Positions 22,119-23,221 of a DNA stretch of 64,000 bases are shown piece after piece. The translations under genes were made by a program, and so were the position numbers. Location of the stretch: positions 9,733,331 through 9,797,330 of the forward strand of contig NC_069010.1 in assembly GCF_001194135.2 (NCBI RefSeq). Reading direction: 5' to 3'. The notes under the pieces are model-generated. The model had not been told where the DNA came from. It worked only from the letters and a program-made list of their open reading frames with translations, and did not search any database. The DNA comes from Octopus bimaculoides (Eukaryota). The stretch's first letter is position 1. The number at the start of each line of letters is the position of its first letter.

Positions 22119-22261
22119 CTTGAGAGGTTGTCGCTGGGGTTAAGAAGTGCAACAGTGCCACCCCTTCTGACAGCCTTTTAAACCACTAACGATGAGGTGA
22201 CCCGCAGGGCATATTTGGTAACACTGCGTTTTGAGGAATGTGGTGTGGCCACATTTTGGTT
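22119..22261 (-). CDS. Six-Cys beta-defensin-like exon of gene B
   Basis: Same cysteine spacing (9-3-12-5-CC), same phase-1 start EPxC and same post-stop intron as exon 9921-10040. Confidence 0.85.
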
Positions 22262-23221
22262 CTTGAAGTATTTTACACGGCAGAAGAAAAGTAAAAAGGA
22301 AAAGAAAAATAAGAACAATGAAAAAAAATTGAAAAAATTACTAATAATAATAATAATAATTCTTTCTATTATAAGCACAAGGCTTGAAATTTGGGGGGAA
22401 GGGGGTCAGTCGATTACATCGACCCGTGTGTTTTACTGGTATTCAATTTATCGCCTCTAAAATGATAAAAGGCAAAGTCTACCTCGGCAGAATTTAAACT
22501 CAGAACATGGAGACTGGCAAAATCCTGGTCAGGATTTTGTCCAGCTTGTTGACAATTGAAGAATGGGAGAGCTGGTATTATATTTATTTCGTAGTTTACA
22601 ATTGTTTCAACACCATGCAGATGAAAAATGAGACATCATAATGTAGACCTGGATGAGAATAATGACATAGTTATGTCTGTTACGTGATGGATATTAAATA
22701 ATAGACTCTGCAGCCATTTTACCATAAACAAATGAAACACTATAATACACTTATTTTTGCTTCAAACCAGATATTTATTGCATCAGTCTCTTAGGCTGAA
22801 CTGCTAAGCTACAGGGATATAAACACACCAACACCAGTTATCAGGTGGTGGTGGGAGACAATCACAGACACAAAGACACACACACACACACAGAGACACA
22901 TGAGAGGCTTCTTTCAGTTTCCGCCTACCAAATCTACTGACAAGGCATTTGTCAGCCAGAGACTGTGGTAGAAGACACTTGCCCAAAGTGCCATGCAGTG
23001 GGACTGAACCCACTACTACAAAAGATGAAATGCCATCCTTGAAAGATAAAAAGATTAACAGATTATAAGATTAAAAGGTAAATACCTGGTAGAGTGATCC
23101 GTACATTGTCCTGCCATGTGACACTGTCCAGCGGGTTAGAAGTGGACGCCTTCCTCTCACTGACCACAAGATGGTAGCTAACAGACAACAGGAAAAGCAG
23201 GGCCAGTCCTTCTACCTTCAT
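22140..23221 (-). CDS. Secreted beta-defensin-like peptide precursor, 85 aa (defensin-like gene B, paralog of gene A)
   Basis: complement(join(22140..22261,23086..23221)). Exon 1: MKVEGLALLFLLSVSYHLVVSERKASTSNPLDSVTWQDNVRITLP with phase-1 donor CAG|GTATTT. Exon 2, after a long polypyrimidine tract: EPKCGHTTFLKTQCYQICPAGHLIVSGLKGCQKGWHCCTS*. A donor AAG|GTAAAT follows 21 nt after the stop (exon ends 22119). The probable 3' UTR exon starts at 21276. Confidence 0.85.

Follow-up and report, generated by a model that had tools for sequence, protein, structure and literature searches.

A two-gene family of six-Cys peptides with a predicted beta-defensin-like fold in Octopus bimaculoides

Cephalopod innate immunity is poorly mapped, and elsewhere among marine invertebrates the defensin fold also serves ion-channel toxins and enzyme inhibitors. 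As of 2020, no antimicrobial peptide (AMP) had been found in a cephalopod by either homology or challenge approaches (PMC7551771), and later reports from these animals, Octopus included, are limited to canonical big defensins that had not been annotated (Gerdol et al. 2020, PMC7203481). Big defensins have in common with beta-defensins the hallmark of a phase-1 intron directly 5' of the Cys domain, and the crustacean panusins combine a compact precursor and a beta-defensin-type Cys array with the lack of a big-defensin N-terminal domain (PMC7203481). The other close systems are the vertebrate beta-defensins and the beta-defensin-like peptides of sea anemones and corals, the latter built on a scaffold that is able to act on proteins rather than on membranes. 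Here we describe gene B, a compact gene for a six-Cys peptide on the minus strand of a 64,000-nt stretch of Octopus bimaculoides DNA (the window; contig C30:9,733,331-9,797,330), which is repeat-rich and consists to 15% of assembly gap (9,333 N). Gene B is a real, conserved gene and one of two of its kind in the genome, the other being its neighbor, paralog A.

Gene B is organized as two coding exons joined over a GT-AG phase-1 intron, as follows.

23086..23221, minus strand: gene B coding exon 1, with the ATG, a putative signal peptide (approximately residues 1-21) and a 24-aa linker; donor CCAG/GTATTT, phase 1
22262..23085, minus strand: gene B intron, 824 nt, GT...AG, phase 1, containing interspersed-repeat copies
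22140..22261, minus strand: gene B coding exon 2, with the entire Cys domain, (E)PKCGHTTFLKTQCYQICPAGHLIVSGLKGCQKGWHCCTS, and then TAA (22142-22140)

The ATG at 23221 has an A at -3 and an in-frame TGA two codons 5', the acceptor reads ...TACTTCAAG/AACCAAAATGT at 22262/22261, and the codon split by the intron is that of the Glu three residues before Cys1. The coding sequence of 258 nt specifies an 85-aa product (MKVEGLALLFLLSVSYHLVVSERKASTSNPLDSVTWQDNVRITLPEPKCGHTTFLKTQCYQICPAGHLIVSGLKGCQKGWHCCTS) that is identical to UniProt A0A0L8GP88_OCTBM, an 'uncharacterized protein' of O. bimaculoides; exact-sequence look-ups of this protein for transcript or contig records returned none. Gene B is a true coding gene in this octopus, and the precursor layout proposed in a first-pass annotation of the DNA, a signal peptide, a linker of about 24 aa and a six-Cys domain, is borne out, the signal peptide being putative; the gene model of that annotation is correct. 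The intron also carries, between 22400 and 23010 on the minus strand, repeat copies that recur across the window together with SINE-like open reading frame (ORF) fragments; these include an 'LNSAEVDFAF…' element, another copy of which lies at 21570-21650, and a tRNA-like 'GSVPLHGTLGKCLL' element that is also seen near 28.5, 43.1, and 48.7 kb.

Paralog A is located in the same window in a tail-to-tail arrangement, with A on the plus strand at 7.1-10.0 kb and B on the minus strand at 22.1-23.2 kb.

7077..7598, plus strand: paralog A coding exon 1, with a putative signal peptide, a propeptide with RR and KR sites, and repeats; ends CCAG/gt
9921..10039, plus strand: paralog A coding exon 2, with the Cys domain (E)PRCEKISFLNTYCLSVCPPGHLQISNISGCPRGTICCT and the stop; phase-1 junction as in B

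Its product is XP_014779245.1 (169 aa; 'histidine-rich glycoprotein-like' at NCBI), and its first exon codes for about 105 residues more than that of B, with tandem HTYGP(G/H)(R/G)H repeats following the propeptide, although an N gap (7409-7465) falls inside the repeats and makes their true number, and with it the RefSeq length of 169 aa, uncertain. The donor and N terminus of gene B are homologous to those of A: the two share the leader pattern MK...LL..SVS.H...SE, a CCAG/GT donor, a phase-1 junction before E-P-(K/R)-C, and the Cys spacing, such that the earlier proposal that B is a paralog of A is well founded. B appears to be the family's compact version, with exon 1 of A still coding for a propeptide and His-rich repeats of about 105 aa.

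The Cys domains of A and B are identical at 18 of 38 residues, with 51% nucleotide identity in exon 2, and a B query matches the A exon with E values of 1.7e-12 within the window and 2.2e-7 genome-wide. Nonsynonymous divergence is well below synonymous divergence (pN 0.41, pS 0.80), with the synonymous sites saturated, so that a dN/dS ratio cannot be calculated. Conservation is limited to the exons; comparison of the A and B flanks by blastn for a common promoter or 3' exon shows interspersed repeats only. Exon-limited conservation together with saturated silent sites calls for long-term purifying selection on both copies, and it is thus very unlikely that B is a dead duplicate. Six-frame translation of the window yields the exact framework C-x9-C-x3-C-x12-C-x5-CC only in A and in B; none of 200 local-composition shuffles of the window has it, and even a looser defensin-type Cys pattern has a mean of 0.01 per shuffle. 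Protein and motif searches of the 2.3-Gb genome give no copies beyond these two. A search for hidden paralogs with C-x3-C-P-[AP]-G-H-L gave five extra matches, compared with three in the control, and none of them has the remaining framework.

The B leader combines a Lys in its n-region with a hydrophobic core of seven residues (LALLFLL; Kyte-Doolittle values up to 3.4), and plausible cleavage sites (VVS/E or SVS/Y) have small residues at -3/-1; the peptide is probably secreted. The 24-aa linker is hydrophilic (GRAVY -0.84) and contains no hydrophobic globular N-terminal domain, which is a big-defensin trait, and there is neither a dibasic site beside the Cys domain nor any of the repeats found in A. 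The Cys domain itself (EPKCGHTTFLKTQCYQICPAGHLIVSGLKGCQKGWHCCTS) is C-terminal and 40 aa long, and it contains 4 Lys, 3 His, and 1 Glu, just as first counted, with the Trp placed two residues ahead of the CC (GWHCC). It has a pI of 8.66 and a net charge of +3, computed as about +1.6 at pH 8.1 (seawater), and the B peptide is only mildly cationic. The corresponding domain of A has a pI of 7.86 and a net charge of +1, but mature A, if the His-rich repeat region is kept, would have 16 His and a charge of +5, greater than that of B. The first-pass description of B as more cationic than A therefore applies to the Cys domains and may be reversed for the mature peptides, and its choice of B as the better antimicrobial candidate has this difference between +3 and +1 as its sole basis; its further proposal, that B acts directly on membranes as an antimicrobial or toxin, is purely inferential.

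The resemblance to defensins comes from predicted structure and from gene layout. AlphaFold2 was run on the exon-2 peptides with a two-sequence (A/B) alignment and five models each, giving a best pLDDT of 77.3 for B and 74.0 for A, with four of the five A models at 71-74. The A and B models have a three-stranded sheet, with strands near Cys2, midway along loop 3, and at the CC (residues 11-14, 22-24, and 35-38), a layout that we take to be the beta-defensin topology on the pattern of the human beta-defensin (hBD) structures. When the models are searched with Foldseek against 350,542 PDB chains, both of the B matches are defensins (crocodile beta-defensin CpoBD13, PDB 7t9q, and human alpha-defensin 4), and all 33 of the A matches are trans-defensin-fold peptides, including hBD2, hBD4, hBD6, AvBD11, BNBD-12, many alpha-defensins, and the Tachypleus big defensin, as well as the sea-anemone and coral peptides tau-AnmTx Ueq 12-1, helianthamide, and Hact-SCRiP1. 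CpoBD13 is the top match of both (probability 0.69 for B and 0.91 for A; TM 0.53-0.55), and it is the exclusivity of these match lists that constitutes the evidence for the predicted defensin fold. The phase-1 intron directly 5' of the Cys domain is present in B, in A, and in the canonical big-defensin exon of the octopus, and A and B are thus defensin-like in their predicted fold and in their exon structure.

Comparison with the described systems shows both shared and distinguishing features. The vertebrate beta-defensins (PF00711; CpoBD13, hBD2, hBD4, and hBD6) are like A and B in having six Cys ending in CC and the predicted three-stranded sheet, and like B in the short precursor and cationic charge, and they provide the top structural match for both paralogs; however, no Pfam match (PF00711/PF13841) or sequence homology can be traced, the host is a mollusc, and B lacks the G-x-C bulge motif, has a charge of only +3, and has a loop 1 of nine residues. 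The first loop of beta-defensins is typically of 4-8 residues, and those of B and A, GHTTFLKTQ and EKISFLNTY, both have nine; loop-1 lengths of 8-14 are found in bona fide big defensins (Saccostrea and Flustra). The big defensins (PF14862; PMC7203481) share with A and B the C-x3-C, the terminal CC, the phase-1 intron, and occurrence in cephalopods, long and compact paralog pairs are present in bivalves, and the Tachypleus big defensin (2rng) is a fold match. They differ in Cys spacing, which is 9-3-12-5 in A and B but usually 6-3-13-4 in big defensins (C6C3C13-14C4CC was used as the family criterion for the C-terminal domain) and 5-3-13-4 in the O. bimaculoides exon, as well as in the sequence features and profile scores given below, in the hydrophobic N-terminal domain that A and B lack, and in the placement of the canonical octopus gene on a separate contig. 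The nearest Cys spacing that could be verified, 9-3-12-4-0, is that of helianthamide (PDB 4x0n_B), relative to which loop 4 of A and B (9-3-12-5-0) is one residue longer. The helianthamide/magnificamide alpha-amylase inhibitors, together with the sea-anemone APETx/BDS-type and tau-AnmTx peptides and the coral SCRiPs, resemble A and B in predicted fold and in being secreted peptides of marine invertebrates, but only the Cys residues are held in common, the phylum is different, and the inhibitory YIYH motif of helianthamide, which lies in loop 1 and plugs the active site of the enzyme, is not present in A or B. The panusins match the compact form of B but by description have a recognizable similarity to big-defensin C-terminal domains, unlike A and B.

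We judge it somewhat better than an even bet that A and B are a family of secreted, stable extracellular peptides with a beta-defensin-like (trans-defensin) fold, for which host defense would be the likeliest role. The B leader would act as a signal peptide removed on entry into the endoplasmic reticulum, and the Cys domain would fold as a three-stranded antiparallel sheet with three disulfides, which by analogy would be C1-C5, C2-C4, and C3-C6, giving a secreted and stable extracellular effector. Its mildly cationic, His-bearing, and partly hydrophobic surface could bind an extracellular target, and the +3 charge, three titratable His, and hydrophobic patch (FL, LIV, and W) would be compatible with binding to anionic membranes or lipids, in the manner of defensins that serve host defense. 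By analogy, defense against microbes through their membranes or lipids may be the most likely single role for B, although we would give it only about one chance in three because the charge is low for seawater, the family is an old and small one that is not expanding, and the scaffold is multipurpose.

Several results weigh against this defensin-like reading. The Foldseek E values are at best 0.36-0.94 and none is individually significant, as expected because the queries have only 38 residues; the models derive from a two-sequence alignment, with only two of the five B models confident, and AlphaFold without a deep alignment may pick the commonest fold for a C...C...C...C...CC peptide. In seawater, the charge of B is low compared with a classical cationic AMP. 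A scan of the window for NF-kappaB/Rel motifs gives three sites, with 3.1 expected, and none near A or B. Pfam searches with the B precursor and both Cys domains give no match (E<=10 for beta-defensin), and neither sequence (phmmer) nor profile searches of the PDB give a relative. With a hidden Markov model (HMM) built from 40 published big-defensin C-terminal domains (Gerdol et al. 2020, PMC7203481), B scores 5.9 bits and A -2.1, and of 500 Cys-preserving shuffles, 22 reach or exceed the B value; alignment of an A/B profile with 21 big-defensin domains by hhalign gives a probability of 5.8%, and neither A nor B has the invariant G-[WYF]-C-R motif or the conserved Glu (G9, R12, and E19). The label 'defensin-like' in the first-pass annotation is accordingly supported by predicted fold and gene architecture and not by these sequence comparisons.

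Genome-wide scans with Pfam Defensin_big and Defensin_beta (PF00711) yield sub-threshold noise, with nothing from PF00711 at the gene B locus, and judged by sequence, gene B is neither a big defensin nor a member of the beta-defensin family. The true big-defensin exon of O. bimaculoides scores 54.4 bits with the same HMM; this canonical C-terminal exon is at C15:3,192,397-3,192,513 on the minus strand (loci L018 and L021), has a phase-1 acceptor, ends in ...ASDSHVCGPDGWCRHICRPAESKDWFLKDICGAFTCCRPT followed by the stop, and is 92% identical to the big defensin of Architeuthis dux. Its N-terminal hydrophobic-domain exon was not found in the 10 kb upstream or genome-wide (E<=10), and the canonical gene may be truncated or may be split by a gap or a long intron. 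The best-looking match of the genome scan, fragment L004, was rejected, being antisense to a 169-aa ORF. Relatives are similarly lacking in protein collections: a word-indexed search of 5.8 billion protein clusters finds only B and A, and a full phmmer search across 1.84 billion representative proteins likewise finds A and B only. Other candidates were discarded, namely three proteins (P0002, P0003, and P0005) that are repeat proteins matched through low-complexity stretches, a Cadherin_C_2 Pfam match that is sub-threshold noise, and PDB matches to a CPCC domain, a polyisoprenoid-binding protein, and Robo2, which are due to chance. The searched literature mentions neither the A nor the B accession, and the searched cephalopod AMP and venom literature describes no such peptide family; as far as these sequence comparisons reach, the family is an orphan.

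One rival reading concerns where the family came from. A and B could be highly diverged descendants of big defensins, 'non-canonical big defensins' that arose by the same route as reported in Ruditapes. A, B, the canonical octopus exon, and the published genes (PMC7203481) agree in intron phase and very nearly in where the intron lies relative to Cys1; the C-x3-C and the terminal CC are common to all, loop 1 varies among big defensins, the Tachypleus protein is among the A fold matches, and the A/B pair resembles the canonical/non-canonical pairs of bivalves. We nonetheless regard this descent as doubtful, as the big-defensin signal in A and B is no better than in Cys-preserving shuffles by the HMM and has a probability of 5.8% by hhalign, the GWCR motif and Glu are lacking, there is no trace of tandem duplication (the canonical gene is on C15 and A and B are on C30), and the N-terminal region of A is a hydrophilic His/Tyr/Gly/Pro repeat, unlike the hydrophobic big-defensin domain; moreover, secreted proteins in general often have a phase-1 intron where leader and domain meet. 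A still less probable proposal is that A and B are octopus-specific, previously undescribed trans-defensin-fold effectors that independently replay the 'big defensin to beta-defensin' transition within one locus. A would then be the two-module form, in which the N-terminal His/Tyr-rich repeat, possibly metal-binding or pH-switchable, replaces the hydrophobic domain, and B would be the compact form derived by trimming of exon 1 with the phase-1 intron kept.

Other rivals concern what the peptides do. The proposal that they have no part in defense, being instead secreted signaling peptides, pheromones, or material-associated proteins, with B a trimmed derivative of A, is about as improbable as the independent transition; its evidence is entirely compositional, in that the RR/KR processing sites and HTYGP repeats of A recall prohormone processing and the His-rich structural proteins of cephalopods and would be the guide to the real biology, NCBI calls A 'histidine-rich glycoprotein-like', and B has neither the repeats nor a dibasic site beside its Cys domain. 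The small, old, and stable two-gene family (saturated pS) is unlike fast-expanding immune families, and signaling roles are known for defensin-fold peptides (PMC7203481), but protein searches find no homology of A or B to known molluscan prohormones or structural proteins. We consider it more improbable again that B is a salivary toxin or enzyme inhibitor in a predatory or defensive secretion, acting through the defensin scaffold on a protein such as an ion channel or glycosidase, as the sea-anemone APETx/BDS-type toxins, tau-AnmTx, and helianthamide do, without membrane attack. Octopuses secrete complex venoms, the closest Cys spacing is that of helianthamide, which with tau-AnmTx Ueq 12-1 and Hact-SCRiP1 is among the A fold matches, and the low net charge of B suits a protein-targeting ligand more than a classical AMP; however, the functional YIYH motif is missing, the searched literature on cephalopod salivary toxin superfamilies mentions no such family, and there are only two genes, whereas venom families are usually multicopy. 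Least probable by a wide measure is that B is non-functional, an annotation artifact or a decaying duplicate of A with a retained open frame. The empty transcript look-ups, the absence of B orthologs in protein database searches, and the lack of a TATA-like element 5' of its ATG, unlike A, would fit such a gene, but both exons are open with canonical GT-AG ends and a conserved junction, an independent annotation predicts the same protein, and all six Cys and their spacing are kept despite saturated silent sites, with pN lower than pS, a pattern that calls for purifying selection on both copies.

The flanks of gene B include three elements that may bear on its transcript.

22117..22139, minus strand: short putative 3' untranslated region (UTR) stretch of gene B, ending in the consensus donor CTCAAG/GTAAAT
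23458..23459, minus strand: AG behind a T-rich tract, the first-pass candidate for the acceptor of a 5' UTR exon; present in the sequence
25693..25820, minus strand: candidate upstream exon, 128 nt, GC-richer, single-copy in the genome, preceded by a polypyrimidine-AG and adjoining an assembly gap

At the 3' end, paralog A likewise has a consensus donor, TAAG/GTACGT, right after its stop (10037-10045, plus strand), and the first same-strand AATAAA is 2.8 kb downstream of B and 1.2 kb downstream of A. A donor after the stop with no nearby AATAAA suggests that in both genes the 3' UTR is interrupted by an unannotated intron and continues in another exon, and the probable start of this intron in B accounts for position 22119, the lower coordinate given in the first-pass annotation. 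At the 5' end, the 236 nt between the AG at 23458-23459 and the B ATG contain three short upstream ATGs, and assembly gaps lie between gene B and the candidate 5' segments. About 100 nt 5' of its ATG, paralog A carries a TATA-like CTATAAATAC, behind which transcription appears to begin at about 70-100 nt from the ATG, apparently with no separate 5' exon. Gene B has no TATA-like element 5' of its own ATG, where a (GA)n tract is found. This tract (23262-23292) is immediately 5' of the ATG, and a microsatellite of about 150 nt, (ATG/CAT)n at 21797-21945, is just 3' of the gene. Assembly quality around gene B is limited because of (TG)n/(TA)n runs and N gaps on both flanks. A palindromic kappaB-like site, GGGATACCCC, is located at 24544-24553, 1.3 kb upstream of the B ATG.

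Further features lie elsewhere in the window. Exons of a TRPC-type cation channel gene extend from about 48800 to 63000 on the plus strand and include an ORF (49256-49957) with ankyrin repeats and a TRP_2 domain (Pfam E 2.3e-22), with further channel-like ORFs at about 50.4-50.7 kb and 61.66-62.07 kb. An ORF at 31875-32396 (plus strand), about 9 kb from the 5' end of gene B, codes for a head with Cys and then for Thr/Pro-rich TTTQP/TTTSKPLP repeats, giving it a mucin-like look, with no Pfam match. Two minus-strand segments, 17656-18327 and 28602-29225, resemble by eye the C terminus of mariner-type transposases and are each broken by an N gap; they read …NPLHYYVWGA.E.ETNK.PC..K.ELKAR.MAAFT.LNKE.VQK, and Pfam gives no match on the short fragment.

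A defensin-like annotation of gene B is plausible given the modeled fold, and its product can reasonably be described as a new octopus peptide with a predicted beta-defensin-like (trans-defensin) fold. The A/B family is a concrete candidate effector for cephalopod immunity, and it illustrates that fold and gene-structure criteria can reveal defensin-like genes missed by profile searches. The pairing of long A with compact B also offers a natural example for the origin of beta-defensin-like genes from longer precursors. Should A or B prove microbicidal, it would rank with the first gene-encoded Cys-rich AMPs shown to be active in a cephalopod; should the family instead comprise toxins, inhibitors, or signaling peptides, it would be a new user of this scaffold in cephalopod secretomes.

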